Source: Glycera tridactyla (lineage: Eukaryota). From it: 64,000 nucleotides of DNA. A program made the position numbers and the translations under genes. The notes beneath the pieces were generated by a model. That model was given only the letters and a program-made list of their open reading frames with translations. It was not told the DNA's origin and did no database searches. Shown here piece by piece: positions 1,689 through 30,219 of this stretch (its first letter is position 1; each line of letters opens with the position of its first letter). The stretch is taken from contig OZ286470.1 in assembly GCA_965644265.1 (NCBI GenBank), positions 83,576,001 to 83,640,000 of the forward strand. Reading direction: 5' to 3'.

Positions 1689-1773
1689 TCAATGGTTCAG
1701 TTCGACCTCGCAGACAGCCATGATACTCCCAATGCCATGGATATCACATGGGGCGTCATCCCACTTCAAATAC
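1689..1773 (-). CDS. Coding exon 6 (last): CTLD C-terminus RYLKWDDAPCDIHGIGSIMAVCEVELNH*
   Basis: Acceptor ctgtttttccag, phase 2. Contains the WxD..C and final VCE motifs that close the CTLD; TGA at 1691-1689. Confidence 0.9.
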
Positions 1774-4700
1774 CTGGAAAAACAGAGATAATTGTTTGAG
1801 TTCATACAGCAGGTATCAAACCAGAGGATTATGCATGCCATGTTTTCCTGGTCAATGAATTGGATTATAGCCACTCGCACATGCACTGAGTTGGAATGTA
1901 TACCATCGGTCTGTACTGACCTCTTTATAACTGAGTGCACCAGGGACCGTCCACGTTCGATACAAGTGATTTGATCTAGCCCAACATTAGTGTGATGTTG
2001 TCTGCATCGACATTCATGGCCACCAGTGAATATTCCTATCTCAGGACAGGAATACGTCAAGTCTTTTTGATTCATTGAAGGCTGGATGTTCTCAATTCTG
2101 CAGATATCACTCTCACAAACTCCGAACACGAGATGAGGGGGAACCTGGAACGTCATCAAGTGGATGTAGCTGACTACTCACTGAAATTCACCTCTACCTC
2201 GTTAATATGTCCACAACCAGGGCTATTTTATAGCTGAGATCGCCGCATATTTCCCAATCACCCGTCACATCCAGAGCGAGTGAAGCAGTAGGAATTAGTC
2301 GGGTTCACCTTCAACATTCTTGCAATTCCAAAGGCCACAAGGAATACATGAAATAGAATGTGATTACGAATTCCACACAAACATGCACGAGCATGTGATC
2401 TTTATCGAAAGGGGGCCTTTTTAGAAAGGTTAGTCACTGTGGTCTACGATCTTTTGGTTACCACATTGAGTGGTGCTTTGTAGATAGGAGGGTTCCCATG
2501 AGCCCAACTGCAATATCACATGAATGATACTTAGTAAACTGCATTAAATCTATGATTCATCCCACTCCGAGAATCTTCATCAAATTTACGAACTCTTCTT
2601 CCATGCTGCAATTCGAATATAGAATTGACATTGATCTGAGAATACAGGATATCGGAAAAGGTCCAGGCTCCGATATGTATCAATGCTAATATTGAAAATT
2701 GGATGGTCAGTGTAATTTGCTGCTGTGAATAACTGTGGTATTCCACTCAGTATTCTGAGCGGATTGGGTTCACTTCAGGTCAGCTTTGTAGCTGGGAAGT
2801 GGCAATATGGAGAAGGAGGTGCTAACTAAAGATTTGCTAGGGCCTTGGGGGCAATTGTTGTCTAGACGCGACTGTCAAATCAGCATATGCAAATTGGACA
2901 ATTGCAGTGATTGGCCCAACGCCCCGCTCCTATAAATGCATTGACCAGCAGGCATCATTTGTATTTTTATCATCAGGCTCGTTGAGGCTAATTGCCGAGT
3001 TCGAATCCCGCAATTATTTCCTCCCAATCAGGGAAGATTCACACCATTGTTAAAAACATCTCAGCTCTATGCATCTAACCAAAAGAGAACACTCCATTGT
3101 GCTTCTCAAATCATACCATAGAAGAATCACCCTTTAGATTATACAACTGCTTTCGTTTGAAACATGCTCATTCAATAGTGATGTTTTCAACAATTTCGCT
3201 TCTTGATGGTAATGAATAAACATTAATCACAATATCATTAGTGTCATATGCATTGATACGCTCATTCAATAGTGCTGTCTTCAACAATTTCGCTTCTTGG
3301 TGGTGATGAATAAACATCAATCACAATATCATTAGTGACCTATGCATTAATACGCTCATTCAATAGTGCTGTTTTCAACAATATCACTTCTTGATGGTGA
3401 TGAATAATCATCAATCACAATATCATTAGTGACATATGCATAATTTACGCTCGACCACACGAGTTGAATGATCAGACATTGAAGCAATTTGGATGATGTC
3501 TGTTTTGTTTGTTTGTGAAAGCATTTCGTCAAAGTCATAGTATAAGTTTTCTTAACAATGAACAGAACGGAACAAATGAAAACAGAGCTTAACTAAATGA
3601 GGTGTACATCAAAGCCATTCAGTGATTGGAGACCGACATACATACAAGTACTCGGAAACCATCAAGATACATCATCTCAGTGGCAAACATAATACATAAA
3701 ACATATTATACCACAGACACGGCCTATTTCAGTGAGATACAGACCCATGAGATATTGTGACAAATATACCACGGTTTTGGAAATATCTCATGGATACTAT
3801 CGGCGTTGTCATCAGTGATATTTTGACTATTTACTGTCAAAATCAACCAAAATTATTGAAAATGTATCAATCCAATGAAAACATGTTTTTTTGCTACGAA
3901 TATTTGAGGAGAATAAGTGCCGAACTGGTGACCTATATAACGTCTCGTAGATATACGCGTATTCGTTTCAGCGTTCTGCGTGACGTTTGATGAATCGGCA
4001 GTAACCATGGTATCCCGCACTGACAACTCTTCTCAATTTCACGTGTATACGAGTCAAATAGCAACTTTGGCAATCATCATCACTCGAATGTGTTTTGCTC
4101 ACTCGGTTTTGAAGCCTGGAAAACCGCCATTTCTGACAGTATCCAAAAGGTCTGCAAATCGTTGCGACAATAGGAGTGCATTGATAAGTGGTACTCACCT
4201 ACTTTCATGATATCCATTATTGATTGATAAATAAAGACACTCCTCTGGCTTGTAGTAACTGAAAAGAAAAAAAAAACGTTATGAGACGCATGACTCACAA
4301 TATGATGACGATTCCATAAATACTATCATCGCCATCATCAGTACCACCAGCATCACCAGCACTACCNNNNNNNNNNNNNNNNNNNNNNNNNNNNNNNNNN
4401 NNNNNNNNNNNNNNNNNNNNNNNNNNNNNNNNNNNNNNNNNNNNNNNNNNNNNNNNNNNNNNNNNNNNNNNNNNNNNNNNNNNNNNNNNNNNNNNNNNNN
4501 NNNNNNNNNNNNNNNNNNNNNNNNNNNNNNNNNNNNNNNNNNNNNNNNNNNNNNNNNNNNNNNNNNNNNNNNNNNNNNNNNNNNNNNNNNNNATCTCAGG
4601 GGAAATGTGATGTTCACTTGCATATCTCGCTCCAACGCACCAAATAAATCAATTTTGTGCTGGTTTCCCAGTGGCTCCTCATTGATTCACTAATGATGCC

Positions 4701-6223
4701 CGCAGATCTGGAGTGAAAAAACCAAAGAAACCAGGGTGCACTCTCTTCACAAGCATACAGATAGACGAAATGCAGGTTCAAAATCACGGGATGACCTATA
4801 CAAACCATTCGTCCATTAGGACACAGTTAGGATGAGAAATGACAACAGGAGTGTTCGAAACGTATCGTCAGATTGCATTTGACGGAGTAGAGTATGACTT
4901 ACTTGTCTGGTTTGCCGGGAACGAAGGCGGCGAAGCCACTGACGGAGCCATGTTCTCGACCGTAGACGTCGACCCACTTCCACTGATTGTACGAGCAGCT
5001 GCCACTGTGGCTTCCCCGAGCACGACGGGCACCGATCCAAAACCCGATCGTACCACGCGGGAAGGCTGCAAACAAAGGCCAAGCATAGGATAAGATTCGA
5101 AGTAGGCCAACAGCGGGCTCTATCATAAGGAGTGATTAGGAAAGATCAAGCTGAAGGTAGGGAGCTGGCAGTATCATAAGGAGCGATTGGGAGAGATAAA
5201 GCTGAAGGTAGGCAGCTGGCACTATCATAGGGAGCGATTGGGAAAGATGAAGCTGAGTGTTGTGAGCTGCCATTATCATAAGGAGCGACTGGGAAAGATA
5301 AAACTGAAGGTAGGGAGCTGGCACTATCATAAGGAGCGATTGGGAAAGATAAAGCTGAAGCTAGAGAGATGGCACTATCATAAGGAGTGATTGGGAAAGA
5401 TAAAGCTGAAGGTAGGGAGCCAGCACTATCATACGGAGCGATTGAGAAAGATAAAGCTGAGGGTTGTGAGCTGCCACTATCATAAGGAGCGGCTGGGAAA
5501 GATAAAGCTGAAGGTAGGGAGCTGGCACTATCATAAGGAGCGACTGGGAAAGATAAAGCTAAAGGTAGGGAGTGGCACTGCCATGAGGAGTGATTGGGAA
5601 AGATAAAGCTCAGGGTAGGGAGCTGGCACTATCATGAGGAGCTACCGAGAAAGATAAAGCTGAAGGTGGGGAGCTGGCACTATCATGAGGAGCGATTGGG
5701 AAAGATAAAGCTGAAGGTGGGGAGCTGGCACTATCATAAGGAGCGATTGGGAAAGATAAAGCTGAAGATAGGGAGCTGGCACTGTCATAAGGAGCGATTG
5801 GGAAAGATAAAGCTGGGGGAAGGGAGCTGGCACTATCATAAGGAGCAATCGGGAAAGATAAAGCTGAAGGTGGGAGCTGGCACTATCATAAAGAGTGATT
5901 GGGAAGATAAAGCTGGCACTGTCATCAGGAGCGATGGGAAAGATAAAGCTGAAGTTAGGGAGCTCCGGAGTGAAGTGTGAGAAAGAGAGTGAGAAATTGT
6001 AACAAAAAGTGATGAGATGGCTACAGAGCCAGAATGCGACAGCGGGTAAATGAAACAGTGATGAAAGAGGAAGCAAATAAGTGATCTTATTTCAAACTCT
6101 TTTGCCGTATCAACCCCCATTAACATAAATGCTAACGCGAGACCATGACAATGTGAGCTCATGAAGTTCTAGATTGGTTATACTTGAATAGAACGATAAG
6201 TCAAGTCAAATAGACAGACATCT

Positions 6224-6293
<70 letters not shown>

Positions 6294-9200
6294 AATACGC
6301 CGGACATTTATATCCAGAAAACCGTGAACAAACGAACAGCTAAATGGAGATACTGATAGTCACAGAGCCATAAATAGCCAACGTTTTCAGTAACAGTTAG
6401 ATGGACTGACAGATAGACAAAAGGAAAGGTGACAAGAGATTGATTGAGAGCAATCATTCTCACATGACTGCGACAGTTTGAGTGTGAGATTGGGGGGTGT
6501 GAGATTACATGAATCTCACACTCCTGGCTGCCGGTGCGTTCTGTGCATTGTGACGTCACGTGGCTCATGCTGATACAATCGTTGCTATGGTGAAGTTACC
6601 CCACATAACGCCAGCCGGCGAGCGTGCGTCAGGTCAACAAACCGAACCTTTGTCCACTGTCACTGGTGCGTTCGCCTCCAAGCATGCATGCAGACACTCT
6701 CACAAACAATAAAATACACATACACACACGACGACGACGGCGATAATGATAACGATGATGACAGAACAAACACACACACACAGGCGAACGCACCAGTGTC
6801 AGCGAACAAACGTTCGGTTTGTTTACCTGACGCGCGCCCGCACTGCGCCTGACGATAAGCTGTCAGTGGCTGGGCATGCTCCCGCTCATGCCCTAAAAGC
6901 GTCACATCCTCCCTGTCATTTCGGCCCACAATTATCGAAATACATCAGAAGTAGTCATGTGAGAAAAGTAAGACGACATTGGTGTGTGAGATCCGCTTGT
7001 TTATTCCCAACTCGGTTGGCTGAGCGGCCGGAGGCACACTCGGCCTTCGGCCTCGTGTGCCTCCGGCTGCTCAGCCAACCTCGTTGGGAATAACGCGGAT
7101 CTCACACACCAATGTCGTCTTACTATAATGAATTGCGAAGCAGCCAACCTGTCTACCTATCAGCCTGAAACGCAAGCAGACTGGTGGGGAGAGAAATAGA
7201 CGGATAGAAAAAAAAGGCATACAAAATCTGAAGAATATTATTATATCATTGTGAACAAACTAAAGAGGGAGCAATAACAAGAACCTGGAAAAAAGGGCAA
7301 GTGGACCCAAGTGGCGTGATTTGGCAGAAAACCTGACTTATCTACGAGTATTGCTTCGGATCATAATAATGAGAAGAAACTATGCATTTATCGTCTATGC
7401 AAATTCAACCAGCAGTCATCAAGTGCGAGGTTTGACCGGGAAGATTCCGGTCTGCCAAGTTGTTTACATGATCATGACTGTGGGAGGTAAATTCGTTTGG
7501 AGCGGTCCCCTGGTAACCTCATCCATCGAGTCATCATATGTATATAAGTCGGGCACGACCACATCGATGTTTTTCTCGACAAGACCCACTGTAGGTCAGC
7601 CTTGAGGCTGTGGAAGTGTTGCCAGAATGGCCCAGATTCGGGAGATTGAGTCAAATCGAGAGGAAGTTGTAGCAATCAGCATGGGAGCTAGATAAGTGAT
7701 TGGTTTAACCTCAACATAATATGGTGACGTCACTTCGTTACATATATACTGCTGGTTTGGCTCTCTCGTATGGGCTATCTTAGTATGTATCGATTGAGAA
7801 GGTGGGATAGGGGTATGATCCCTAGAGAGAGGCAGTCCTAATGGCCCATCTCTTCACTTCACCACACTAGTCTAGATTGTTCGTTTGTTTGTTTGACTGC
7901 TGTGACTAAACTCAACCCTGTATACCACTGTGAGAGCCCAAAGGCTCTTATCTTTGCAGTGCTGCTGTCGTTACATATATACTCAACCCTGTATACCACT
8001 GTGAGAGCCCAAAGGCTCTCATCTTTGCAGTGCTGCTGTCGTTACATATATACTCAACCCTGTATACCACTGTGAGAGCCCAAAGGCTCTTATCTTTGCA
8101 GTGCTGCTGTCGTTACATATATACTCAACCCTGTATACCACTGTGAGAGCCCAAAGGCTCTTATCTTTGCAGTGCTGCTGTCGTTACATATATACTCAAC
8201 CCTGTATACCACTGTGAGAGCCCAAAGGCTCTTATCTTTGCAGTGCTGCTGTCGTTACATATGTACTCAACCCTGTATACCACTATGAGAACCCAAAGGC
8301 TCTTATCCTTGGAGAGCTGCTCTCGGCAATTCGTGGGTGACTGGTTTAACCATGGCAAAGCACAACCGTCTGGCTGTGATCGAATTTTGAAGTCTCTTGT
8401 GTGCTTGCATGTATGCTGAGGAGTGGTATCAGTGTAGCTGGTCTGTAATCACATTTTCCAGCGCCTCTGCAGTCTCGCTTTTGTGTTGTATAGCTCTTAG
8501 TCCCTTGCCATGAGATGAATATTTTGACTTGTCGGGTAGTGGGTATGCTTCATCATCGAATCACAGGGCTAAACATGATTTTTCCAACACCGAACCTCGC
8601 AGGTTAGATATTAATTCGTCGTTTTGGTACAGATCAGTTAGGCTAGCAAGGTGAAGAATACACTAATGCGATATGAAGGATCTAATAGGAACCTAAAAGT
8701 TGTAGTAATAATAGTTTTCCACAGTCAACCCAAATAGGAGTGCAAAAACAGCTATCCGTACAATGGATGATAGCAATCAGGTCTGAATGATGCATGCACC
8801 TGCACCAGGATATGGACTATTCGATGGAATCTAGCCTCTAATTTGGCTCAAGATATGGAAACAATCTTCACAGGGTTGCATCTTGCAAACGGGGACCCAA
8901 CCTCAGGAATACACATCACAGCAACATGTAGAACAGCAGGACATTTCCGGCACTCACAATATACCACCAGGCAAAAATGACACGCAACGAGCAAAAGTGG
9001 ATGAACAAACAAAATACACATGTACAAGCACTATTGAGAAGTTTCAGTATAGTTGACCCTAAGTCATAAGACGCTTTCATCTCACAACATGTTTTGTCTA
9101 CTATCTTATTATGTCAAGGTGTTAGGATAGTGATGCTTGGTGAGGACAGAGTATGGAGATAATGGCTTTGGTCAATACTGGTGCTGTTTAACTCCGTCCC

Positions 9201-12200
9201 ACCAGCTAATCGACCAACCAACCACCCAGCCAACCAACCAAGCTGAACTCTCTACAGAGATGACAGGATTCTCTGAGCCATTCCCCACTCTATACTGCAA
9301 GCACCAAGGAGAGGTCTTCCAATGAATAGCAGAGTGTTGCCAATGGTGTCGCTGTAGTCGTTATGTCTAGCTTCATCCCATCACATCAATTATATTTCTC
9401 CTATTCTCAGACCGATGTTTTGTCAATTTCATCCGTTATCTTCTTTGCCCCTCCTACTAGCTCTTCAGATACTATTCTGAGGTATGTTATGAGCAGCCAA
9501 CAGCGTTACAAACCATCAAAAGGATGTTCGACTTCCACTATATCAAGTCAATATAATAATCTTCACACACAAAAGGTATGTCCTTTATGTCTAGGTGGTT
9601 GATCCTATATGTCTATAGGTTGGCTGGTATGCCTTTGGATGTCAGCCAACCTATAGACATATAGGATCAACCACCTAGACATAAAGGACATACCTTTTGT
9701 GTGTGAAGATTATTATATTGACTTTATAGCCTTGGGCACTTGTTACTACACACACATAAATGTCCTCCATAGGCGATGAGCTAGCCACCAGAGTGGCAGC
9801 TTGGAGAATCAATGCTTCACACAGCAACACCAACGTGTCTGGCGCACCAAGCAGCTCTGATAGCTCCACAAGCATCAACACTGTTGTTAGACCTTCCACA
9901 TCAAGGAACCTTCTCCAACCATTCGCAAAAAAACGTAAGGCTGATGACCTTGAATATAAGGTGATCCCAGACGTGGCCTTTCCCACTTTCCGTGAACTTC
10001 GCAAGATCTCATTGAGACAAGCCAAAGTGACCAACCATCTTCGCTTCCTGTCAGAATGCCTGGACAAGAAGACCGTACCAGCGGGCCTAAAGCCGAACCT
10101 GAAACCAGCATTTGGGGCAGAAGAACCAGCATTCATGGAGAAATGGAACACAGCATGCAACGAGTTCAGCACCAACTTGATCATCCTTTTGGGAGAACGA
10201 GCAAACCAAGAACTGGAGGCCCTGAATCCCAGAGTAGAAACCAAGAAGACAGAGATGTTGGAAAAGATAACAGAAGAAGAGATGAAAACCAAAGCCGTCG
10301 AATACCTGAAGGAGGTGATCGCCAAAGACGTCCCAGAGACGAAACGACGCAGAGAACCCCAAGCGGGACCATCTCGCATCCGAGACAACAGACAACGCCA
10401 GATGGGCAACAGACAACAGAGAGACTTCCGAGGCCGAGGGAACCCCAGACAGGGCCGAACAACCGACTCGGAGGAAGACCTACTCCACATAATCAGAGCA
10501 CTGAAGAGCCGCAGAGGCCGCCGCTAAACCAACCACCAGACAACAACATCGTAGTCGATGAAGAACCACCTCCAGAACAGACTGTTAACATTTTACCAAA
10601 CAATAAACACATGGAATCATACAACCAGGGTTCAGTTGTGAACATATCCAACCACACCCTCAATACGGCAGAAATCAAAGCCCTAAGTAGAACCCTCAAA
10701 TTTTGCCCAACCCCACCACCCACCGACGTCGTAGACGTCATGGATGACTTTGATGAATATGTCAGAAAAATAAAATTGAGAATCTTCTTCAAAGATGATG
10801 ACACAGAACCAACACCAGATCAAATCATGCTACGATCCTTGAGAAGGATTTTTAAAATAAGATCCAAGTGGGTACCACCACTACAAGACGAATGTGTAGA
10901 GTCATTCAAAACAGCTGTAAAAAACAATATTCTAAGCCAGAAACCGATCCACAACAGAAGAAACAACATGAACAAACCAGAACGAGAAGCAATCAAAGCA
11001 CTATACAACAACAAAGACATAACCATCAAAAACGCAGACAAAGGCGGTGCAGTAGTAGTCATGAACACCACAGACTACATACGTGAGGCACACCGACAAC
11101 TCCAAGACGAGAATTTCTATATCAAACTAGATGAGGACCTGACTCCTACACATTCAAGTCAAATCGATAACTATCTGAAGGGGGAAACCCTCTTGGGCAA
11201 TATACATCCCAGGATAGCAGAAATACTTACACAATATGAGGCTAGAACAGCACGCTTCTACCTACTACCTAAAATACACAAAAAGAAAATCCCTGGCAGA
11301 CCCATTATCAGTGGCAACAAATGCCCTACGGAAAGAATCTCCAGTTTCATAGACGAATTATTAAAACCATATGTGTTGAAAATAAAATCATATGTGAAAG
11401 ACACCACGGAATTTACTAAGATCATACATGACCTACCAGAATTCAACAACAACTGCATATTAGCAACCATGGATGTTACATCCCTATACACTAATATACC
11501 CAACCATGACGGGATAAAAGCCATAGCTGAAACAATCAGAGGAAAACCTCACCTCATACCAAACACTATGATCTTAAAACTACTGGAGATGGTATTGCAC
11601 AAAAATAACTTTGAGTTCAATGGACAACACTATCTACAGGTGGGCGGAACAGCCATGGGCACAAAAGTGGCACCCACATATGCCTGTCTCTTCATGGCCA
11701 ACCTAGAAGAGAAAATGCTTCAATCAACGCCAGAAAAACCAAGAATATTCCTACGATACATCGACGATATTTTCATGGTATGGGAGAAAAGCCCAACAGA
11801 ATTACAGAACTTTGTCTCTCATTGTAACAACTTTCATCCCACGATCAAGTTCACGGCAGAACAAAGCCAAACCGAGGTAGTCTTCTTAGACACCAAAGTA
11901 AAATTCAACGCCAACACCAGGCGACTATACACTGATCTATATAGCAAGCCCACAGACTCCCACAACTACCTACCATACGATTCTCACCATCCTCAACATT
12001 GCAAAACAGCACTACCATACAGTCAATTACTACGTATACGTAGAATATGTACAAAAGAAGAGGATTTCGAAACACAAGCAGAAAATATGAAGGGATATTT
12101 CGCACGACAGGGATACCCAACAGAAACTTTTGACAACGCATACTCAAAAGCCAAAACCACTGAACGTGAAACACTACTACAACCTAGAACAAACAACACA

Positions 12201-15200
12201 ACGGGAGTGGAGGAACCACCCATACCTCTCATCCTCACATATGGCACAAACATGCCCAACATTACAAAAGTCCTCAAACGAAACTGGCACCTCCTACGCG
12301 ACTCTCCCCTGGCAAGAGACGTAGTAGGACCTGCTCCACTTATCGCCTACAGACGACCACAAAACATAAGAGAAAAACTGGTAAGAGCAGGAGTCAACTA
12401 CCCACCAGATGACGTCACAATAAACATCGTACAAACACCCACAACAAGAGAACCAAAATGCCCGAAAGTGGTATGCAACTTCTGCGGCCCACTAAGACGA
12501 CAAGAAACATTTAGATGCCCCAACACAGGCACAGTACACAACCTACCAAAAAACCTCAACTGCCATAGTAAAAACGTCGTCTATCTACTATACTGTGAAG
12601 AACATAAAATCCAATATGTAGGAGAAACCAAACGCCCATTCATCATAAGACTCAAGGAACATCTTGCAGACATCAAACACCAGCGAGACAAGCCAGTCGC
12701 AAACCACTTCAAAGAAAGACGACACAGAGCAAAGGAACTGAAGTTCTACATCCTCGAAAAACTCAAGAACACACAGGAAGATGACACAGAAAAGAGAAGA
12801 AGATGCGAGAGAAAATGGACATATTTGTTCCGCTCTTTCCACCCTTACGGTTTGAATAAAATGGGAAAATGAACCATATCTCCACCTTATTTTTGCTTTC
12901 CACTATATCAATTCAGATGGGTGTACCGAAAGGGAAATTCAAAGGTATCAAAATCTTTGAGACAAAATTGAGATAAATGGCACACGCATTCTCTTTCTAT
13001 TACAGATACACACCGCCTTACATACAAAATAACTTGACAATCTCACATCAGAAGAAGACATTTGTACATAATCAGACACAGATCTGCTTGGTTACCAAAT
13101 AATCAAAATATTCAGAAAATATTGCGAGTAGGCAGGATATATTCAAGTGATCAGAAGCAGATGCATTTGGCTGATTAATTTATGATGATATTCGAACCTA
13201 CATCTCACTATATTTAGACAATAAGCACTACAAGAACCTAGATGAACCAGCATTATCTTTCTAGTGAAAAGTAGACCTAGGATATACAAGACGATGGATG
13301 TTATCGATGGAATTGGTGAATTGCCATCTCCTGCTTCCCATCACATCTGATGCGATTCATCAAATCCTCATAACCTGATTACAGCAGATGAGGTGACGGT
13401 AATCAGAAATGAGGCTGTCTCATTAACGTCGCCAATTGTTGGAGTAGATTTCATCCAAGTGACAATTCAATCAATTTCTCACTGATGTCTATTTCAGCCA
13501 GGAAAGCCGTGCCTTGCGCCCACATGTCGCATCGCAATATTCCGAGAATTTCTGACTTAAGGATGTGCTCCATACTAATTGTCCAGACACCACATTGGCT
13601 GAATTATGAGCACCACGTGATCTATATTGAGACGTCCATCAGATCGGATCCCAAGCAAAACATGAAGTTTCCAGGAAAATCATAGACACTGTAGCAGGAA
13701 ACATAGATCGATTGACTTATGTATTGGATATGTAAATTAGTCTATGTGTAGAACTGCTAGAGTTGCCTATATATGGCACGGATAGATTGGCCGTGTATGT
13801 TATTGTTAGATTGGTATATATGGTTCACTTTTGAATTGGCCTTGGTTTGTCATAGGTACGAGAATGTTTGATTGGTGTGTGTAATGCATCATTAGATTGA
13901 TCCATTATCACATGGATGTGCCATTTTCAGGGAAGTGTTGAGTATTGCGTGTGATACTTCACAGCTGAATGAGGACTGCTTTTTGATGATTTCTCCCCTA
14001 ATCCATGTGATAAAAGCAAGACTATATGATCGTGAGGCAAAAACGCAATACCAAACTCGATGTGAATTTCTCCGGATGTCCCGAGGCCGAAATTTACTCC
14101 ACGTCATATAGTCTTGCTATACGTATTGGACTTACATAGGACTGCTAGATCAGCCTGCGTATGTCACTGTAATATTTTCAACTTCTAAATTGGCCAAGTA
14201 TGGCATTGCTTGATTGACAAGACACTATTGAAATTGCCAATGTATGACACTGTTAGAATGGTCGATGTCTGTCACCGTTAGATTGGCCTGTGAATGGCAT
14301 CCTCAGATCGAGATATATATGAATATCCCAGTGATAGTTTGGTATGTGTGCAGGATAATTGGACCGACTCAAGCATTGCACTGTTGAATTGGCTCACCGA
14401 CGGCAATGTTAGTAAGGCCTATTGTTTATATTGTTAGACTGGCCTATGTACAGTACTGTTGGACAACCTTATGTTAGAGACTGATGAAGTGACCAATACG
14501 TTGGACTATTCAGTAGGCCGATGTATGGGAACATGAACCAGTCCGAAGCATTAGAGAGCTATGTTGAACACCCTGACCAATCAATAAAGATCACACGTCA
14601 CAGAAGCCAGGATGAACGTCCTCCATTTGAACTCACAATCAATCGCTCCGCAAGGGGGCTCTTATATACTGCATTATGGTGAGTCCTGCAGAATACTTGA
14701 CAAGCATTGAAGCGGCGATTTCATAGCAAACATAACCATGCATTCTATCCTGATACTTACTTATCATCGATTATATTGCCTAGCCCCGTAAGAAGTGCGC
14801 AAATACCGTTTTACGTTGTTTCTATCGCTACATCAGTGATAAAAGGAGAGGAAGAGAGGGACAGAGAGGAAGAGACAGGGAGAGAGAGATAGGGATAGCA
14901 GGATGGGTAGTATAGGATGCGATCTCACATTTCTCCATACAATGATATTTTTCGTACTTCAAAGAAAGAAGAACACTGCTATTTGTGTCTAATTGTATTT
15001 GACGATGTAAGATAACGAGTTGAATCAAATCAAACTAATTCAACTCACTATAGCAGCAAAAATCATTATAGAAGGATCACCGGAGGACACTTTCAAAAGT
15101 TCAGAAGGGTAATGTAAAACAAGCCCACTGCAACTACTACGAGATGCTGAAATTATCAAATATGCATTCAATGACTAGCATCCTTCGAAAGTTCCCGTCA

Positions 15201-18200
15201 CTGAGGCAGCCATAGACTATAAAAGATGTGTTCGACAGTGTAATTCTACGGAGTTGAAGCGACGAACCAGTGTGAAACAACATGTCTGACTCATGGATAG
15301 GACTGGACAAAACACCGTTTCCACTAAGGCAGGTTTTGTCAAGCTCCAAGTCCACTGTGGAAACCTGAAAATTGTATCAGGTGAATTTATGATGGGTTAA
15401 ATGAATACCACCCAGTTGGGATGCAAGGGTGTCAGTTGTGATGTGACATAGGTTACATCTGGCGGTGGCAGCGTCTGCAGCATCCCTGGTGTCACGTGAT
15501 GGTCGCCGCATCCCGCCGCATCCCGCCGCATCCCGGCTACTGATGCAAGAGATGCTGCTCTATATGGATGGCACCACTATTGATCTATTGATCGTTTTTC
15601 TGTTCGCCTGATTGGACGGTTAGCATCCATCCTCATCAGCTGAAGGCGATCTCCATCAACCCTTGAAATAACACATTTATTTGGGCCTGATGCTCACATT
15701 CCCATTAATCTTGTCCATCTGGTCCATCCCACCCACATATCCCAACTAGACTTAAAAAGAAACACTCTCTCAGATTCCGAGAAAAATCAATCATGGTCCG
15801 ATGACCTAGAATGTCCAGCCCTGACCTTGTCGCATTCGGAGCAATGTCTTTCTTTGATTGAACTTTTCAATCGAATGCGAGGTGGCAGAAAGTAGAGAGA
15901 TTACGGACGCAGATATTAGAACGATCGATTTACCTAACTGAACTTTCCTATTCTTGCATTTCCATACTCCTTCCCTACCCCTACTCGCCCTTCTACCTCC
16001 CCTATTCTTTCTCTTGTTTTTCTTCTCCTTCATCTTCTCCGTCGTCGTCTTCTTCTTCTTTTACTTCTCCACCTCCTACCTCTCTTCTTCTTCTTCTTCT
16101 TCATCTTCTTCTTCTTCTTCATCTTCTTCCTCCTCTTCTTCTTCTCACTCTTCTTCATCTCTTCTCCCTCTTTGTCTCCTCCTCCTCCTACTTCTTTTCC
16201 CTCTTCTCCCTGTTCTATTTTCTTTTTCTTCATCTACTTTCTTTTTCTACTTCTCCTCATACTTCTTCATCTTCTTCCTCTCTTCGCCCTCACCATCCTC
16301 CTAAAGCTCCTTCCCCACTTCTCACTCTTCTTCTTTTCCTCTTTTTTCTTTTTCTTCTACTTCTTCTTCTTGTCCTTCTTCTCTTCCTTCTCCTACCTCT
16401 CTATCTTCTCCTTCTCCTTCTTTTCCTCGTCTTTTTCCTGCTTTGCTGCTGTAATTGCTCGTGGATATCATCTTTTTTTAGCCCCTTCGTCAACCCAATA
16501 TGTCATTGATACTGTGGTGGTTAGATAGGTGGTCTTTAATTGATATGGCGCCTTCATGGTTTATTGCAACAACTGGATTCTCTGTGGACATGACTTTGCA
16601 GGACTCGCCTTTCAAGCAATTTCATTCTCACGTGCTGATGGTCTAACTTTTTCTCCTTCTTCTCCTGCAGTCTATAGATAAATAGTGCAGATATTTATAT
16701 ATTAATGAGAACCTGTGACAAATCGACCATTTCCGTCTTCATGACTTTCGCAGAAACAAGTCATGCAAGGTGGGCATGTACACGGCTATCAATACAACAC
16801 ATATGGTCATACAAAACATTTATCATTCCTACAGATACGGTTAATGAAGCCTTATATTGACTTGTAAACAGAAACGCGGACGCTGTGGACAGGGAAATAG
16901 TNNNNNNNNNNNNNNNNNNNNNNNNNNNNNNNNNNNNNNNNNNNNNNNNNNNNNNNNNNNNNNNNNNNNNNNNNNNNNNNNNNNNNNNNNNNNNNNNNNN
17001 NNNNNNNNNNNNNNNNNNNNNNNNNNNNNNNNNNNNNNNNNNNNNNNNNNNTGCAGGGTCTGACAGTGTGATTACCTCATTCATGGCAATTAGAAAGGCT
17101 GTTTAGCGCTTCATTGTCATTTAGACGATAAAGAGGCCAATATGAAATGCAATTTTCGGTGTATATATTATCGAAGAACACCCTCAAACTTGACATGTTT
17201 ATTACAATATTCTTCAGATTAACTTGTTATGTGGTATAATGGAGCAGGATGCCAACAGGAAATGGCAGTCGGAGCAATAAGTGAGTTGGATTCGGAGTGC
17301 CTGAGAGGGAGCATTGGGGCATAAAATAAACCAGCAATGCCACTAATCTGTCAGAGATCTGATCAATCGTGTAGAATGCCCAGAGCGACCAGCAAAGATT
17401 AATGATCTCCGTCATCAATCAACTCCGCCATTTGTCTACTTCTCAATCTCCTAAGCGACATTTATGTTTCATTTCTCGATGATCCGCCGCGCGTTCCCAA
17501 CCCGCATAGCTTCCGGCCTGTGCCAGTACTTCACAAACTTTCTCACTGGATGGTGGGTCTGTTTTGAGAGAACATTCCGTCAGCATCAGGTGGGCTATAT
17601 TGAGATGCTCATGTAATTAGCATTGGGGGAGGCATTCAAGATTCCTGTCACACACACAGTTCACGTTATGGATTTCACGGTTATGCCCATGCGCATAAAG
17701 GATCCACCATTGTTATTCGAAAAGAGAAGAGAGTTCCCGAAGTGCTCGCTTCTTCAACAATCACTCATTCCTTATGGATTTTTTCGCATGACCATGTATG
17801 AATTGACCCATTACTTGTTGGAAGGATGTAAAAAAATGAAATGAAATGAAATGTTAAGGTTCTAGGTCCACTTTCTCCACTTGAGTAGGGTAAATCAGAC
17901 CACCTCCCAAGGAGGAGCAAAGATGAAGGGTGAAACATTCCTGCATGGTAGGGCCAGGGATTGAACCCCAGAGCCATGGAAGGATGGAATCAATCGACCA
18001 ATCAATCAATCGATCGATCAATCAATCAATCGATTGTAATTCACAGATCTCGTCGACCTCACTTGTATTGAAAGCATATGTCTATCCCATCAATGACGGA
18101 CGAAAAGCTGATGTTTTTAAGGATGCCTGGCTTGCAGGCATCCTTCTTCTCATCACTCTCGTTTGGGACTGCAGTTTAGATGACAAAAAATGGAACATAT

Positions 18201-27200: not shown

Positions 27201-30200
27201 CGAATGTGATCAGTTCGGTAAGAGTCTTCATATTCAGGCAATCTAGAGGGTTAGTCCGCAAGGCGGGTCACTTTCCCTCAGGACAAATCTATAATTCGGC
27301 TTAGGTGATGACTAAAAGAACATGACAAGCGGAGAGTCATATAGTTGTTTCTTATAGCAGTCCCAACACGATGTGCTCATTCAATAGAAGCTATGTATGC
27401 GACTATCACTAGAACTCGGGGGACCTGGGTGTTGGGACTGTTCACACCAGTTGAATAACCAATTCCGCTAATCTAAGCGGACACACTGCAGAGAAAAAAA
27501 ACCACCAGGCGCTGATCTAATATGTGGCGGGAAATCGTATTAGTCGAAATCCAACAAAGCTGGACTGGGCAGAGGCTGCGTTCGATTCTACACAATGGTA
27601 GACTGGGTGACATTCGGTTATATTGCTAGCTCAGCAGGATGTGTTTTCTCTGAATGATAAAACAGCTGACATCCAGGGGTGGACAAAATGGCAGTTTCGT
27701 AAGGATAGGAATGAAGACATATCCGAAAGTTCTATAGTCTCTTCAATGGAGATCGGCGATAAATTCGGCACTTTGCAAGAACAGAAATCTGATCCACCTG
27801 AATTAGAGTCCTCACTAGCGATGTTATGGACAGTAGGATTGCGCTAAAGGAGGCGTTCGTGGTATGGCGAAAGCAGGCCACAATCTCAGGTATCGAACTC
27901 ACCGAAATATCATGGGCTATTGGAGAATGTCGGAGCACTGCTTTTCGGAACTAAGACACTAACCGTTGGTGTGATGTTATAGAATTCGCGACGGAATTAT
28001 TGAATGAAGGGAGAGGATGGTCGGTGGTATTGGAAGTGATACTTACTATTCGAATGGCAGAGTAGCTCCTGCACTATCCCAGGACATTCTTTCCGTCGGG
28101 TGCATATTTGGTGAGGGGATATACAACCCTTATTGCCACACCAGATGTAACCAACCTTGCACTGGTGAACTGAAAATAGAGCATAACCATTGCAACGATC
28201 GATCAATGCGATACCCGTCCGGTTTAGTAGATTAAATGTGCAGCAAAATTACGAGATTGATTGATAATGTGAGGTGAGATAATTGTCATCTCAGAAGTGG
28301 TGGTGACAGTGATGATGAAATGATTGCTGAAGGCAGGCGTTTAAGATGTGTGAGCAATTACAGCACTAATAGTAGTACTTGTTGTGGTAGTTGTAGTGGA
28401 GTGGTCATTGATGTAATTGTAGAATTAATAGTAGTTGTAGCCGTGGGTAAAGTAATGACAACNNNNNNNNNNNNNNNNNNNNNNNNNNNNNNNNNNNNNN
28501 NNNNNNNNNNNNNNNNNNNNNNNNNNNNNNNNNNNNNNNNNNNNNNNNNNNNNNNNNNNNNNNNNNNNNNNNNNNNNNNNNNNNNNNNNNNNNNNNNATT
28601 GTGAATACTGTGGTACTAGTCTTAGTAATGTAGCAGAAACAGCACCTGTGGTTGTGGCAGTTGTATGGGTATTTCTTCTCTTCTTTGATGTTGTTTCCAT
28701 TGATAGTAATAAGAGCAGCAGTGAGATGTAGTTGTGATTAGTGCTAATATTGGCATAAGCATTATCAGNNNNNNNNNNNNNNNNNNNNNNNNNNNNNNNN
28801 NNNNNNNNNNNNNNNNNNNNNNNNNNNNNNNNNNNNNNNNNNNNNNNNNNNNNNNNNNNNNNNNNNNNNNNNNNNNNNNNNNNNNNNNNNNNNNNNNNNN
28901 NNNNNNNNNNNNNNNNNNNNNNNNNNNNNNNNNNNNNNNNNNNNNNNNNNNNNNNNNNNNNNNNNNNNNNNNNNNNNNNNNNNNNNNNNNNNNNNNNNNN
29001 NNNNNNNNNNNNNNNNNNNNNNNNNNNNNNNNNNNNNNNNNNNNNNNNNNNNNNNNNNNNNNNNNNNNNNNNNNNNNNNNNNNNNNNNNNNNNNNNNNNN
29101 NNNNNNNNNNNNNNNNNNNNNNNNNNNNNNNNNNNNNNNNNNNNNNNNNNNNNNNNNNNNNNNNNNNNNNNNNNNNNNNNGTGATAGTAGTAATAGTTCT
29201 TGTAGGAGTAGTAGCAGCAGTCGTAGTAGACATGATAGTGATGGCGTTGTTGTCGTTGTCATCGTCTTTGTCGTCCTCGTCCCCTCCCCCCACCCCCTTA
29301 CTTCACCCCTTCACCATCCTAGGATATTACAAACCGTATATACAAGAAACATGTCATTTGACTCACCTCCCATTCGGAATGGTGCGAAGACAAGGAAGGC
29401 CACAACGATACCAGTGATTGCCAAGACGATACCTAACAAGATGGCGGTGATGAACACCCATCTCTTAAACCTGCGCATCTGCTTCTTCCTCTTGCTTTTA
29501 TGCTCGGGATAGACCTGCTTCACCGAGCGGGCCATCTTATTCTTCTCAAATCTTGGGCACGTCAAACTACCACAGGACTTGGAGTGTGTTTTTGACGTAC
29601 AGTACTCAGCTACGTTCAAAGTCCGCGAACGATTGTTTTCATTCTGCACCGTCGTCGCCGTATTGTTCCTCTTCCGGTCCAGAGCGGAGTAGGAACGACT
29701 GAGAAAGGCAATTCGTTCAGGTTCGTGGTTGCCATGGGGACCACAAAGACTATTATAATACAAGACAGCATCATCGTATAATCCGCTGGAATCTTCACTT
29801 TCGTCTTCTTTGAATAAGCGCGAGCGTGCTACGGAGGAAGCGGTAGCGCGTAAGGTATTGGCGGCGCTGGCGGGATGGGAAGGCGTCGGGGTACCGGGAC
29901 CAGCATCCTTGTGCTGACTCTCTGGTAGCATTCGTAAAAGATCCACAGATTCCTGAATGGCATCTTCCTCCGACTCCGTCTGTAGTCCCATCCTGTAGGA
30001 AGACCGGCGGTTGGGTCTCGGCCAGGATAACCGGCGACCGGTTTCGCCGGTTGTCACAACCTGCTGGTTGGCCTGCGAGGGTAAGGGTGCATAGATGGTG
30101 TTTCTAGTGACTTGTTTGGGACTGGTGGTGATGGAGGTGGTTGTGGTTGGCTGGAAGGAGGGAAATGCATCCAGCCTGCCTGTATCATACAGACTACAAC

Positions 30201-30219
30201 TTTCCATTATATCCTCCAT
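1689..30219 (-). CDS. Spliced gene model (6 coding exons, 491 aa): type II transmembrane LDLa + C-type lectin domain receptor
   Basis: Exons 30219-29367 (853 nt), 28169-28047 (123), 20198-20007 (192), 5065-4903 (163), 4258-4199 (60) and 1773-1689 (85) sum to 1476 nt = 492 codons including the stop. All introns are GT-AG with consistent phases (1,1,1,2,2). The last four exons join into one continuous CTLD. Additional small exons in intron 28046-20199 or in the N-gaps cannot be excluded. Confidence 0.85.
3166..3452. repeat. 94-bp tandem repeat, ~3 copies
   Basis: GCTCATTCAATAGTG...CATATGCA units start at 3166, 3260 and 3354, with a partial unit at 3449. Confidence 0.9.
4199..4258 (-). CDS. Coding exon 5: 60-nt CTLD exon (NYYKPEECLYLSINNGYHES)
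   Basis: Acceptor ttttttttttcttttcag, donor gtgagt; phase 2-2. Supplies the E-C motif expected after the PDN loop. Confidence 0.87.
4903..5065 (-). CDS. Coding exon 4: CTLD core (FWIG motif through long loop, KPD motif)
   Basis: Translates as FPRGTIGFWIGARRARGSHSGSCSYNQWKWVDVYGREHGSVSGFAAFVPGKPD. Acceptor ttgtttgcag, donor gtaagt; phase 1 in, phase 2 out. Confidence 0.9.
5122..5960. repeat. 51-bp purine-rich minisatellite, ~16 copies
   Basis: Unit GGAAAGATAAAGCTGAAGGTAGGGAGCTGGCACTATCATAAGGAGCGATTG; it produces 17-aa repeats (GKIKLKVGSWHYHKERL) in the ORF track. Confidence 0.95.
6224..6293. repeat. (GACA)n microsatellite
   Basis: Direct reading. Confidence 0.97.
6541..6600. promoter_or_regulatory. 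Candidate intronic regulatory cluster: CRE palindrome overlapping E-box, and an RFX X-box-like site
   Basis: TGACGTCA at 6551-6558 overlaps CACGTG at 6557-6562; GTTGCTATGG at 6581-6590. The surroundings are locally CpG-rich. Motif matches only. Confidence 0.3.
6626..6833. repeat. 52-bp imperfect inverted repeat (fold-back / MITE-like)
   Basis: 6626-6677 matches the reverse complement of 6782-6833 at 47/52 positions; the spacer is ~104 bp of simple sequence. Confidence 0.85.
6950..7130. mobile_element. Non-coding long hairpin element (arms 6967-7124) with ACTCGGCC-TTC-GGCCTCGT apex
   Basis: Near-perfect ~77-bp arms around a TTC loop. Its borders CATGTGAGAAAAGTAAGAC...GTCTTACTATAAT match those of the dispersed family at 13.9, 19.7, 37.3, 39.6 and 60.8 kb. 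Confidence 0.8.
7875..8460 (-). mobile_element. SINE-like fragment with (CAAA)n tail, internally expanded into a minisatellite
   Basis: The minus strand of 8312-8450 aligns with 57360-57490 (CTCCTCAGCATAC...CACAAGAGA...TTGCCA.G.TTA.ACC.GTCACCCA.GAA). A (GTTT)n tail lies at ~7880-7895. Confidence 0.55.
7910..8312. repeat. 71-bp minisatellite, ~5.6 nearly identical copies
   Basis: ACTCAACCCTG starts at 7910, 7981, 8052, 8123, 8194 and 8265; each unit has a small stem AGAGCC-CAAA-GGCTCT. Confidence 0.96.
9545..9724. repeat. Perfect 82-bp inverted repeat with 16-nt loop at the 5' end of the PLE
   Basis: 9545-9626 is the exact reverse complement of 9643-9724 (82/82 checked by eye); loop GTATGCCTTTGGATGT. 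Confidence 0.97.
9760..10527 (+). CDS. PLE ORF1 (255 aa): N-terminal helical domain plus R/Q-rich basic tail
   Basis: Open ATG-to-TAA ORF. Contains HLRFLSECLDKKTVPAGLKP...FMEKWN, resembling the FLxxC...IPxGL N-terminal motif I recall from PLE polyproteins, then a charged helical region and an RGRG/RRGRR basic C-terminus. Confidence 0.75.
   Translation: MSSIGDELATRVAAWRINASHSNTNVSGAPSSSDSSTSINTVVRPSTSRNLLQPFAKKRKADDLEYKVIPDVAFPTFRELRKISLRQAKVTNHLRFLSECLDKKTVPAGLKPNLKPAFGAEEPAFMEKWNTACNEFSTNLIILLGERANQELEALNPRVETKKTEMLEKITEEEMKTKAVEYLKEVIAKDVPETKRRREPQAGPSRIRDNRQRQMGNRQQRDFRGRGNPRQGRTTDSEEDLLHIIRALKSRRGRR
10056..12872 (+). CDS. PLE ORF2: reverse transcriptase + GIY-YIG endonuclease (recognisable homology starts near Met 10611, 753 aa)
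   Basis: RT motifs: FYLLPKIHK, PGRPIIS, MDVTSLYTNIP, GTAMGTKVAPTYACLFM, LRYIDDIF, HPTIKFT, FLD. Linker CPKVVCNFC (C-x4-C-x2-C). Endonuclease: NVVYLLYC...YVGETKR...RLKEH...NHF...ERKW...PYGLN. No internal stops. Confidence 0.95.
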   Translation: MPGQEDRTSGPKAEPETSIWGRRTSIHGEMEHSMQRVQHQLDHPFGRTSKPRTGGPESQSRNQEDRDVGKDNRRRDENQSRRIPEGGDRQRRPRDETTQRTPSGTISHPRQQTTPDGQQTTERLPRPREPQTGPNNRLGGRPTPHNQSTEEPQRPPLNQPPDNNIVVDEEPPPEQTVNILPNNKHMESYNQGSVVNISNHTLNTAEIKALSRTLKFCPTPPPTDVVDVMDDFDEYVRKIKLRIFFKDDDTEPTPDQIMLRSLRRIFKIRSKWVPPLQDECVESFKTAVKNNILSQKPIHNRRNNMNKPEREAIKALYNNKDITIKNADKGGAVVVMNTTDYIREAHRQLQDENFYIKLDEDLTPTHSSQIDNYLKGETLLGNIHPRIAEILTQYEARTARFYLLPKIHKKKIPGRPIISGNKCPTERISSFIDELLKPYVLKIKSYVKDTTEFTKIIHDLPEFNNNCILATMDVTSLYTNIPNHDGIKAIAETIRGKPHLIPNTMILKLLEMVLHKNNFEFNGQHYLQVGGTAMGTKVAPTYACLFMANLEEKMLQSTPEKPRIFLRYIDDIFMVWEKSPTELQNFVSHCNNFHPTIKFTAEQSQTEVVFLDTKVKFNANTRRLYTDLYSKPTDSHNYLPYDSHHPQHCKTALPYSQLLRIRRICTKEEDFETQAENMKGYFARQGYPTETFDNAYSKAKTTERETLLQPRTNNTTGVEEPPIPLILTYGTNMPNITKVLKRNWHLLRDSPLARDVVGPAPLIAYRRPQNIREKLVRAGVNYPPDDVTINIVQTPTTREPKCPKVVCNFCGPLRRQETFRCPNTGTVHNLPKNLNCHSKNVVYLLYCEEHKIQYVGETKRPFIIRLKEHLADIKHQRDKPVANHFKERRHRAKELKFYILEKLKNTQEDDTEKRRRCERKWTYLFRSFHPYGLNKMGK
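13935..14121 (+). mobile_element. Dispersed tail+hairpin element, copy A (right arm largely deleted; GAA-type apex)
   Basis: GTGTTGAGTATTGCGTGTGATACTTCACAGCTG tail, CATGTGATAAAAGCAAGAC arm start, CGAGGCCGAA apex and GTCTTGCTA end; aligns with copies B-E. Confidence 0.75.
15060..15400 (+). pseudogene. Decayed non-LTR retrotransposon RT fragment (RTE/CR1-like)
   Basis: After a 1-nt frameshift the sequence reads AAIDYK..VFDSV, resembling the FxDYxKAFDSV RT motif. It is preceded by a QKFRR (QxGFRxG-like) segment; several stops. Confidence 0.35.
15960..16445. repeat. Polypyrimidine (TTC/TCC)n low-complexity tract
   Basis: Direct reading. Confidence 0.95.
17236..17430 (+). mobile_element. Possible decayed RTE-type LINE 3' end
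   Basis: Fragments IME/RMPTG..SR and NAQSDQQR resemble the RTE C-terminal GxRxRGRP...AQDR..W region; heavily degraded. Confidence 0.25.
17540..17855 (+). mobile_element. SINE-like element with (GAAAT)n tail
   Basis: Internal ATAAAGGATCC...TCGAAAAGAG segment resembles central domains I recall from invertebrate SINEs; ends in AAATGAAATGAAATGAAATG. Confidence 0.5.
17870..17985 (-). mobile_element. tRNA-derived SINE head fragment
   Basis: Minus-strand GGGTTCAATCCCTGGC at ~17953-17970 is a Pol III B-box-like motif; no cloverleaf. Confidence 0.45.
17991..19310 (+). pseudogene. Possible decayed plus-strand (antisense) CTLD-like gene relic with duplicated exon starts
   Basis: ~100-bp duplicate at 17991-18088 and 18810-18907, each with (ATCA)n + TGTAATTCACAG acceptor. 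CPRNYHMVRDS* ends at 18770. DWSTGFPQP...AECG*...FCYH...YWHEEQPW...VICE lies at 19100-19290 with an in-frame stop at 19167. Confidence 0.3.
19690..19943 (+). mobile_element. Dispersed tail+hairpin element, copy B (near complete; GAA-type apex)
   Basis: TTTCGATGAAGTATCAGGTGTTGAG tail, both arms present, apex CACGAGGCAGAAGGCTGAGTG at 19853-19873. Confidence 0.8.
20007..20198 (-). CDS. Coding exon 3: N-terminal part of C-type lectin domain
   Basis: Translates as TAGWVHFSSGSPNGSRYITISKAFTFSGAQDACRDQGGHLAHVTNIREQVFLQEYLDREIKKN, the CTLD beta1-alpha1-alpha2 pattern. Acceptor tcttacttgcag, donor gtgagt; phase 1-1. Confidence 0.9.
20232..20516. repeat. 26-bp imperfect inverted repeat pair (MITE-like) next to the exon 3 acceptor
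   Basis: 20232-20257 matches the reverse complement of 20491-20516 at 23/26 positions. Confidence 0.55.
21217..21394. mobile_element. Tc1/mariner (pogo-like) MITE, 178 bp, TA target duplication
   Basis: TA|CAGTCGAACCTG...CAGGTTCGACTG|TA with internal AAAGACCACC repeats; second copy at 44035-44211. Confidence 0.9.
22829..23131. repeat. 154-bp tandem duplication (2 copies)
   Basis: ATCCGTCATAGAGGCCCATTGGAGAC...GAAGGGCCTGAA starts at 22829 and 22983. Confidence 0.92.
28047..28169 (-). CDS. Coding exon 2: LDL-receptor class A-like module (6 Cys)
   Basis: Translates as HQCKVGYIWCGNKGCISPHQICTRRKECPGIVQELLCHSN with LDLa Cys spacing. Acceptor ctattttcag, donor gtaagt; a symmetric phase 1-1 exon of 123 nt, typical of LDLa exons. 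Confidence 0.88.
29367..30219 (-). CDS. Coding exon 1: ~255-aa low-complexity cytoplasmic tail, basic cluster and transmembrane helix
   Basis: Part of the 302-aa ORF 29311-30219. KSKRKKQMRRFKR is followed by hydrophobic WVFITAILLGIVLAITGIVVAFLVFAPF. The donor is GGA G|gtgagt at 29366. A strong acceptor (tttttgtatgtttcag) lies upstream, with the exon starting at 30280. Confidence 0.88.

Follow-up and report, generated by a model that had tools for sequence, protein, structure and literature searches.

A Probable Single Gene for a Type II Membrane Protein with an LDLa-Like Module, a C-Type Lectin-Like Domain and a Long Cytoplasmic Tail in Glycera tridactyla

Gene Model and Exon Structure

The stretch of DNA analyzed here (hereafter, the window) comprises 64,000 nucleotides (nt) of Glycera tridactyla, namely positions 83,576,001 to 83,640,000 of the forward strand of contig OZ286470.1 in the NCBI GenBank assembly GCA_965644265.1. 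Six exons on the minus strand of the window, between positions 30219 and 1689, very probably make up one functional, conserved gene. A first-pass annotation of this DNA had proposed that these exons splice in phase to encode a protein of 491 amino acids, and this model was exactly reproduced from the DNA in a script-based check: the exon lengths (853 + 123 + 192 + 163 + 60 + 85) give 1476 nt, equal to 491 codons and a stop codon. The five junctions have intron phases 1, 1, 1, 2, and 2 and split the codons GTT (V), AAT (N), ACC (T), AAT (N), and AGG (R), respectively. All donors match GT[AG]AGT, and a pyrimidine tract followed by CAG forms each acceptor. The six exons, which we regard with high confidence as a single protein-coding gene for a type II membrane protein of 491 residues, are as follows.

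30219-29367, minus strand: exon 1, 853 nt; start codon, disordered cytoplasmic tail of ~253 residues, basic cluster, and transmembrane helix; ends in phase 1 at GGAG/gtgagt
28169-28047, minus strand: exon 2, 123 nt, phase 1 to 1; six-cysteine module resembling the low-density lipoprotein receptor class A (LDLa) repeat
20198-20007, minus strand: exon 3, 192 nt, phase 1 to 1; N-terminal part of the CTLD (C-type lectin-like domain) through its first helices, with Cys1 in DAC
5065-4903, minus strand: exon 4, 163 nt, phase 1 to 2; FWIGA, WKWVD, an extra conserved cysteine, and KPD where EPN or QPD is expected
4258-4199, minus strand: exon 5, 60 nt, phase 2 to 2; YYKPEECLYL with Cys2 of the CTLD; located through the ortholog at locus L011
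1773-1689, minus strand: exon 6, 85 nt including the TGA stop; YLKWDDAPCDIHGIGSIMAVCEVELNH, with WDD in the WND position, Cys3, and Cys4

The assembly contains runs of unread letters at 28463-28597 and 28769-29180 in intron 1, at 16902-17051 in intron 3, and at 4367-4592 in intron 4. The exons are free of such gaps; the nearest gap edge is separated from exon 5 by 109 nt and from exon 1 by 187 nt. Because all of the gaps are intronic, no reading frame crosses unread letters. The order of the exons across the gaps rests on the scaffold, but it agrees with that of the ungapped ortholog contig described below.

At the 5′ end, an in-frame TGA (30231-30229) lies three codons upstream of the ATG, and therefore a signal peptide cannot come from an upstream exon. 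A strong acceptor (tgtttcag) about 60 nt upstream of the start region suggests an intron in the 5′ untranslated region and thus an untranslated first exon. Two candidate start codons are present, Met1 and Met5 (30207-30219, minus strand). Most homologs align to Met5, and the protein may thus be 487 rather than 491 residues long.

A different candidate for exon 5 was rejected. The open reading frame (ORF) piece (Q)ENMACIILW (1846-1822, minus strand), part of the ORF that continues into exon 6, resembles the E-x-C strand of a CTLD, but it has no phase-2 acceptor and is not conserved, and the true exon 5 is that at 4258-4199.

Conservation, Copy Number, and Selection

Homologs were searched with exon 1, yielding 11 proteins in a word search and 13 proteins in an exhaustive representative search. 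None of them carries a name, and each is an ORF call extending through the exon 1 donor and hence an unspliced genomic fragment. ORF-based gene calls in public assemblies thus miss the whole family, each homolog found being an unspliced exon fragment.

Locus L011, an ungapped contig of 94 kb, encodes a tail 43% identical to that of the window. It carries all six exons within 11 kb in identical order and on one strand, with matching donor and acceptor positions and phases, including the 60-nt exon 5 in the same phase. Exon 4 is 70% identical to L011:19439-19597, and 22 of the 24 residues of exon 6 are identical to L011:20819-20890. When L011 was compared with positions 1-31000 of the window by tblastx, the six exons, in order, were the sole conserved blocks. 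It is therefore unlikely that the locus has a further conserved exon, for example one that supplies a leader to a separate secreted lectin. The earlier claim of a single gene thus agrees with the finding of the same six exons, order, and phases in a second species and of nothing else conserved at the locus.

The other loci give partial views of the gene. Exon 1 is followed by an ortholog of exon 2 in L001/L003 (68% identical) and L004 (55%), as it is in L011. Orthologs of exon 3 were found in P0029/L008 and in L011; the word search with exon 3 gave one match, on a 1.3-kb contig and hence with no linkage information. The CTLD exons were not found in L001/L003 (~15 kb past exon 2), L004, L002, or L012 within the readable 10-15 kb, and the short contigs of L009 and L010 end before they could reveal any exon downstream of exon 1.

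Across species, the CTLD exons are 62-92% identical despite saturated synonymous sites. The proportion of synonymous differences between species (pS) is 0.64-0.95, which is saturated, compared to 0.03-0.29 for nonsynonymous differences (pN). Judged by these values, the gene is under strong purifying selection. An exon 1 search of the 2.04-Gb genome, which comprises 207 contigs, gave one match, indicating a single copy.

Two further observations concern individual homologs. In L012, from a close relative of the L011 species, the exon 1 homolog is interrupted about 310 nt before the part that encodes the transmembrane helix, by an intron or a disruption (10900-11210); a DDE_1 transposase ORF (L012:13695-14426) lies downstream on the opposite strand, and exons 2-6 were not seen within 9.5 kb. 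P0024, P0025, P0027, and P0028 (loci L009 and L010), from environmental assemblies, form a second, distant group of tail and transmembrane sequences. They have in common ESVDLLQMVPE, a G-S-[IVT]-Y-F-[ND]-Y-[LI] block, and a CC-basic block, and their exon likewise ends just past the helix.

Topology and Membrane Anchor

The topology of the protein was judged by hydropathy, charge, AlphaFold2 modeling, and the upstream stop codon. The membrane-anchoring part of exon 1 is as follows.

29377-29499, minus strand: basic cluster KSKRKKQMRRFKR (residues 241-253) followed by the transmembrane helix (residues 254-281)

The Kyte-Doolittle profile (19-residue windows) reaches its maximum of 3.04 at residue 260 and does not exceed 0.13 across the first 60 residues. 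Residues 254-281 form the sole hydrophobic segment, and the preceding 20 residues have a net charge of +9. In an AlphaFold2 model built on a 19-sequence alignment, residues 1-240 are disordered, with a predicted local distance difference test score (pLDDT) below 50, and residues 242-281 form a single helix with a pLDDT of 90-98. The first-pass annotation had placed a basic cluster before the only hydrophobic helix and had assigned a type II topology, with the N-terminus inside and the C-terminus outside. Both assignments hold: the cluster and the helix are present at 241-253 and 254-281, the N-terminus has no hydrophobic stretch, the strongly basic flank is on the N-terminal side of the one helix, and a stop codon precedes the ATG. 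These features thus predict that exon 1 encodes an intrinsically disordered tail with short linear motifs, joined to a type II signal anchor.

The Extracellular Modules

In exon 2, the six cysteines are spaced C-6-C-4-C-6-C-5-C-8-C, which is class A spacing, with G-C-I before the third cysteine, and all six are invariant in four species. The acidic calcium cage of LDLa repeats (D-x-x-x-D-x-x-D-x-S-D-E) is absent: the region reads TRRKECPGIVQELLC, and one acidic position is kept across orthologs. In the ESM Atlas, all 30 of the nearest 30 clusters were LDLa (score 0.91, 201 shared features). An AlphaFold2 model of the exon had a pLDDT of 77, and its top Foldseek matches were mostly repeats of megalin, VLDLR, CD320, and LRP, none of them significant (best E value 0.92, TM ~0.5). 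We describe the module as LDLa-like and probably calcium-free.

The CTLD is encoded by exons 3 to 6. Exon 3 matches Pfam Lectin_C (PF00059) with 23.7-25.2 bits against a cut-off of 22.6, and its orthologs score 26.9 and 27.3, so that three species pass; the match spans positions 2-37 of the 107 in the profile, since the exons were searched singly. A profile search of the PDB with exon 3 retrieved the CTLDs of DEC-205, PLA2R, and the mannose receptor with E values down to 1.7e-13, and the exon holds a conserved NGS sequon. For exon 4, the ESM Atlas gave a weak Lectin_C lead only. The four canonical cysteines and the landmarks of the fold are all present, namely DAC in exon 3, FWIGA and WKWVD in exon 4, EEC in exon 5, and WDDAPC and AVCE in exon 6, and all are kept in L011. 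The first-pass annotation had described an ectodomain of LDLa followed by CTLD. The order and the CTLD stand, and the LDLa part is degenerate, scoring below the family threshold and having no cage.

This CTLD has two further features. First, at calcium site 2, KPD and WDD replace EPN/QPD and WND in the window and L011 alike, with lysine in place of the glutamate or glutamine calcium ligand. Because of these replacements, classical calcium-dependent sugar binding is doubtful. Second, a fifth CTLD cysteine occurs in the long-loop region in exon 4 (4995-4997, minus strand), in the sequence GSCSY, and is conserved in L011 as GTCQY. It brings the number of ectodomain cysteines to an odd count of 11, and therefore an inter-chain disulfide, giving a covalent dimer, or a free thiol is possible.

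Conserved Motifs in the Cytoplasmic Tail

Motif conservation was assessed in an alignment of exon 1 homologs, in which 13 members of the core family cover the LYYNSL site and the distant homologs are P0024, P0025, P0027, and P0028. The tail features, from the N-terminus, are listed below.

30082-30099, minus strand: TIYAPL (residues 41-46), kept in the window, P0001, and P0002 (as TIYAPF) only
29998-30036, minus strand: RRLS (residues 62-65) and RRSS (residues 71-74), basophilic kinase-type sites
29935-29952, minus strand: ESVDLL (residues 90-95), of the acidic dileucine type [DE]xxxL[LI], opening the block ESVDLLRMLPE
29746-29763, minus strand: LYYNSL (residues 153-158), which follows the invariant acidic block E142-D143-S144 and fits both the pattern of an immunoreceptor tyrosine-based inhibitory motif (ITIM) and YxxPhi
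29680-29718, minus strand: ERIAFLSRSYSAL (residues 168-180), with a second invariant YxxL (Y177-S-A-L180)
29554-29607, minus strand: EYCTSKTHSKSCGSLTCP (residues 205-222), a conserved Cys-x4-His-x3-Cys-x4-Cys block

ESVDLL, which was absent from the list of the first-pass annotation, is the best-conserved motif of the tail and the sole one kept in every homolog. Each of the 16 sequences with coverage here, the four distant ones among them, contains ESVDLL(R/Q)M(L/V)P, and V92, D93, L94, L95, L98, and P99 are invariant in the tail alignment.

Each of the 13 core homologs that cover the LYYNSL site matches V[LV][YF]Y[NT]S[LIV]. Within the core family, neither Y155 and S157 nor the upstream E142-D143-S144 block varies, while L or V stands at position 153 and L, I, or V at position 158. 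The four distant homologs retain the tyrosine of the site and have lost the hydrophobic residue at +3. The ITIM match proposed earlier for LYYNSL is thus a conserved one within the core family, with the +3 position lost beyond it.

Two longer blocks lie closer to the membrane. ERIAFLSRSYSAL has the invariant residues E168, I170, F172, L173, S174, Y177, S178, and L180 and follows the pattern ERIAFLSxxYSxL in the core family. EYCTSKTHSKSCGSLTCP has the invariant residues E205, Y206, C207, T208, S209, K210, H212, S213, C216, G217, L219, and P222 and follows the pattern EYCTSKxHSxSCGxLTCP in the same family. This block may serve metal binding or palmitoylation.

The remaining motifs are restricted to close relatives. 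TIYAPL had been read as resembling an immunoreceptor tyrosine-based switch motif (ITSM), a reading not supported here: the sequence is not a strict ITSM (TxYxx[VI]), and outside the window and two close relatives the site reads DTYART or VTYATH. The proposed RRxS kinase-type sites are present as RRLS and RRSS, and only the five closest species retain RRLSWPR and RR[STPA][ST]Y. The whole exon 1 ORF gave only sub-threshold noise against Pfam.

A Possible Endocytic or Sorting Receptor

The best reading of this protein, to which we assign a probability of roughly 0.4, is that of an endocytic or sorting receptor. The motif types [DE]xxxL[LI] and YxxPhi are sorting signals for adaptor protein (AP) complexes and are used by the type II lectin receptors ASGPR, DC-SIGN, and MGL. 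The retention of ESVDLL even in the most distant homologs is one reason for which the trafficking reading is favored here. Under this reading, the ectodomain would bind a conserved, probably endogenous ligand, likely by a chemistry other than the classical calcium-dependent recognition of mannose or galactose. The single copy and the highly conserved CTLD fit a fixed ligand of this kind. Clathrin adaptors, engaged by ESVDLL and by the two invariant YxxL/I motifs of the tail, would then move the receptor between the surface and endosomes. Regulatory phosphorylation could act on the RRxS sites, which are clade-specific, and the odd, conserved fifth cysteine of the CTLD may permit a covalent dimer.

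Several points weigh against this reading or the model beneath it. First, the motifs are short. On shuffling of the single sequence, the ITIM pattern (P = 0.26), T.Y..L (P = 0.06), and RRx[ST] (P = 0.08) did not rise above chance, and therefore only conservation carries weight. Judged by their sequence, such motifs are also ambiguous, since the same tyrosines suit ITIM function or the docking of Src homology 2 (SH2) domains. In addition, the conserved block LLRMLPE exceeds a dileucine motif, and so a partner other than AP adaptors may be bound. Second, the gene model is a prediction from genomic sequence and ortholog comparison, and it was searched exon by exon. The exon 1 matches in the libraries searched included no full-length spliced or named relative. 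Third, domain support is uneven. The only Pfam family matched by exon 2 is Ldl_recept_a (PF00057), with 13.6 bits for the window and values of 13.6, 14.0, and 21.5 overall against a cut-off of 24.1; the match covers positions 1-29 of the 37 in the profile, and one ortholog gave no match. A PDB sequence profile search with exon 2 was negative as well. Exons 4-6, searched individually, matched no Pfam family, and the PDB profile search with exon 4 was negative.

Alternative Explanations

The first-pass annotation had suggested an inhibitory or self-recognition receptor. In this explanation, a Src-family kinase would phosphorylate Y155 and an SH2 phosphatase of the SHP-2/Corkscrew type would be recruited, so that an activating pathway is dampened. 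LYYNSL fits [ILVS]xYxx[ILV], its positions -2, 0, and +3 are kept in 13 of 13 core homologs, the motif would be accessible within a tail that AlphaFold2 models as disordered, and the type II CTLD topology is common to DCIR, NKG2A, and Ly49. However, the four distant homologs have lost the +3 residue, TIYAPL lacks conservation, the pattern does not exceed chance in a single sequence (P = 0.26), and the same residues also suit YxxPhi sorting. Receptor families of the natural killer (NK) or self-recognition type that carry CTLDs are multigene and fast diversifying, often with paired activating forms. Unlike these, the present gene is single copy and slowly evolving under strong purifying selection, and no paired activating relative was found in the genome by the exon 1 search. 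These observations weakened the inhibitory or self-recognition interpretation, which we now consider unlikely.

A rather improbable alternative is that the protein acts in cell adhesion or development as a surface receptor or co-receptor, its tail blocks (LLRMLPE, ERIAFLS, and the Cys-His-Cys-Cys block) binding a dedicated cytoplasmic partner. The conserved blocks are indeed longer than minimal sorting motifs, the C-x4-H-x3-C-x4-C arrangement is invariant, and a single-copy gene with a very conserved ectodomain would suit such a role. However, AlphaFold2 predicts no folded domain in the tail, which also has no Pfam family match, and no known partner motif was recognized in it.

It is very unlikely that the protein is an activating or phagocytic receptor which, through Y155 and Y177, would signal in the manner of an immunoreceptor tyrosine-based activation motif (ITAM) or hemITAM and recruit a Syk/Shark-type kinase as Draper, Dectin-1, and CLEC-2 do. 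Two invariant YxxL/I motifs are present, and the acidic stretch EDESEDSSGLYDD upstream of the first recalls the acidic residues that precede a hemITAM tyrosine. However, 22 residues separate the two tyrosines, and insertions widen this distance in other species, which is outside the 6-12 residues between YxxL/I motifs of the ITAM rule; the acidic residues do not stand immediately beside Y155, unlike those in DEDGYxxL.

Finally, a chimeric model is highly improbable. It would divide the locus into two genes, exons 1-2 for a type II LDLa-like protein and exons 3-6 for a secreted C-type lectin of its own, with a signal-peptide exon overlooked, perhaps in an intron or gap. This model draws on the large gap-containing introns (7.8 and 14.9 kb) and on the CTLD exons not found within the readable 10-15 kb at L001/L003, L004, L002, and L012. 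However, exon 3 cannot start a protein because it begins at a phase-1 acceptor with an in-frame stop just upstream and no ATG, exon 2 ends in the matching phase 1, order, strand, and phases are the same in L011 across saturated synonymous divergence, and tblastx of the whole locus revealed no conserved candidate leader exon.

Comparison with Known Receptor Families

In our reading, an endocytic or sorting receptor of this build would work most like the vertebrate type II lectin receptors ASGPR, DC-SIGN, MGL, and DCIR. The vertebrate type II C-type lectin receptors of groups II and V, which also include NKG2A and Ly49, likewise have the N-terminus inside and the C-terminus outside, no signal peptide, a single C-terminal CTLD, and an N-terminal tail with tyrosine-based and dileucine-type motifs. 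Compared to these receptors, the present protein has several distinct features. First, its stalk is a six-cysteine LDLa-like module, whereas theirs is a coiled-coil neck. Second, its tail has ~253 residues compared to ~40-70, with no detectable sequence relation between the tails. Third, its CTLD, with KPD and WDD, has neither the EPN/QPD sugar site nor the character of an NK-type domain, and its gene is a single copy rather than part of a cluster.

Other families share parts of the architecture. DGCR2/IDD (CTLD group XIII) likewise combines LDLa and CTLD in a membrane protein, but it is a type I protein that has a signal peptide and a VWC domain and whose tail is C-terminal, whereas the present protein is type II and has no VWC domain. 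The type II transmembrane serine proteases (TMPRSS, matriptase, and corin) likewise have an N-terminal tail, a signal-anchor helix, and one or more membrane-proximal LDLa modules, but in the place of the CTLD they end in a protease domain, which SRCR, CUB, or Frizzled domains may accompany. Crustacean secreted lectins are similar in that a single CTLD, whose sugar-site tripeptide is non-canonical, follows an LDLa module; that of Marsupenaeus japonicus, for example, is secreted and has LDLa, then one CTLD with a QAP motif (PMC5379193). These lectins are short and secreted, with a signal peptide and a Pfam-grade LDLa, whereas the present protein is membrane-anchored, with a long tail and a cage-less LDLa-like module. 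A six-frame search of the host genome gave no match to the arthropod cuticle (R&R) domain Chitin_bind_4 or to the molluscan hemocyanin beta-sandwich; since the control genomes gave none either, this is a weak hint that the host is probably not a crustacean.

A search of the literature on LDLa- and CTLD-containing transmembrane lectins yielded type I or secreted architectures only (such as TcCTL16, with CCP, CRD, and a transmembrane segment, and the shrimp LDLa-CTLs), and a described type II LDLa-CTLD receptor was not found there. Domain shuffling around CTLDs is common in invertebrates. The protein could be the founding member of a conserved invertebrate family of type II LDLa-like/CTLD receptors in which VLYYNSL is a working ITIM or a dual ITIM and sorting switch, a proposal that we hold to be quite improbable. 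If the ITIM does work, phosphotyrosine-based inhibitory signaling by type II C-type lectin receptors would have arisen, with another stalk and tail, in animals other than vertebrates.

Immunity and glycoprotein clearance in vertebrates rely centrally on type II C-type lectin receptors whose tails act in signaling or sorting, and the invertebrate counterparts of these receptors are not well characterized. The gene described here provides a conserved, single-copy example with a different build, including an LDLa-like stalk, a disordered tail of 250 residues, and an altered sugar site. Its few invariant tail motifs can be mutated singly, which would make it a clean system for separating sorting, phosphotyrosine signaling, or both outside vertebrates.

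Other Elements in the Introns

The introns of the gene hold several further elements. Four other long intronic ORFs gave no Pfam match. The features with identifiable content are the following.

9533-12911, plus strand: apparently intact Penelope-like retroelement in intron 3, antisense to the host gene
9760-10527: first ORF of the retroelement, 255 residues, with no Pfam match
10056-12872: second ORF of the retroelement, 938 residues, with RVT_1 (E value 2.6e-11) and a C-terminal GIY-YIG match of 22.4 bits against a cut-off of 22.6
5112-5915: tandem array of a 51-bp unit, 15.8 copies
7910-8325: tandem array of a 71-bp unit, 5.9 copies (97% matches)
3166-3441: tandem array of a 94-bp unit, 2.9 copies
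16012-16437: long TCT-type microsatellite

In addition to these arrays, tetranucleotide (CTGT-like) runs flank several of the gaps of unread letters.

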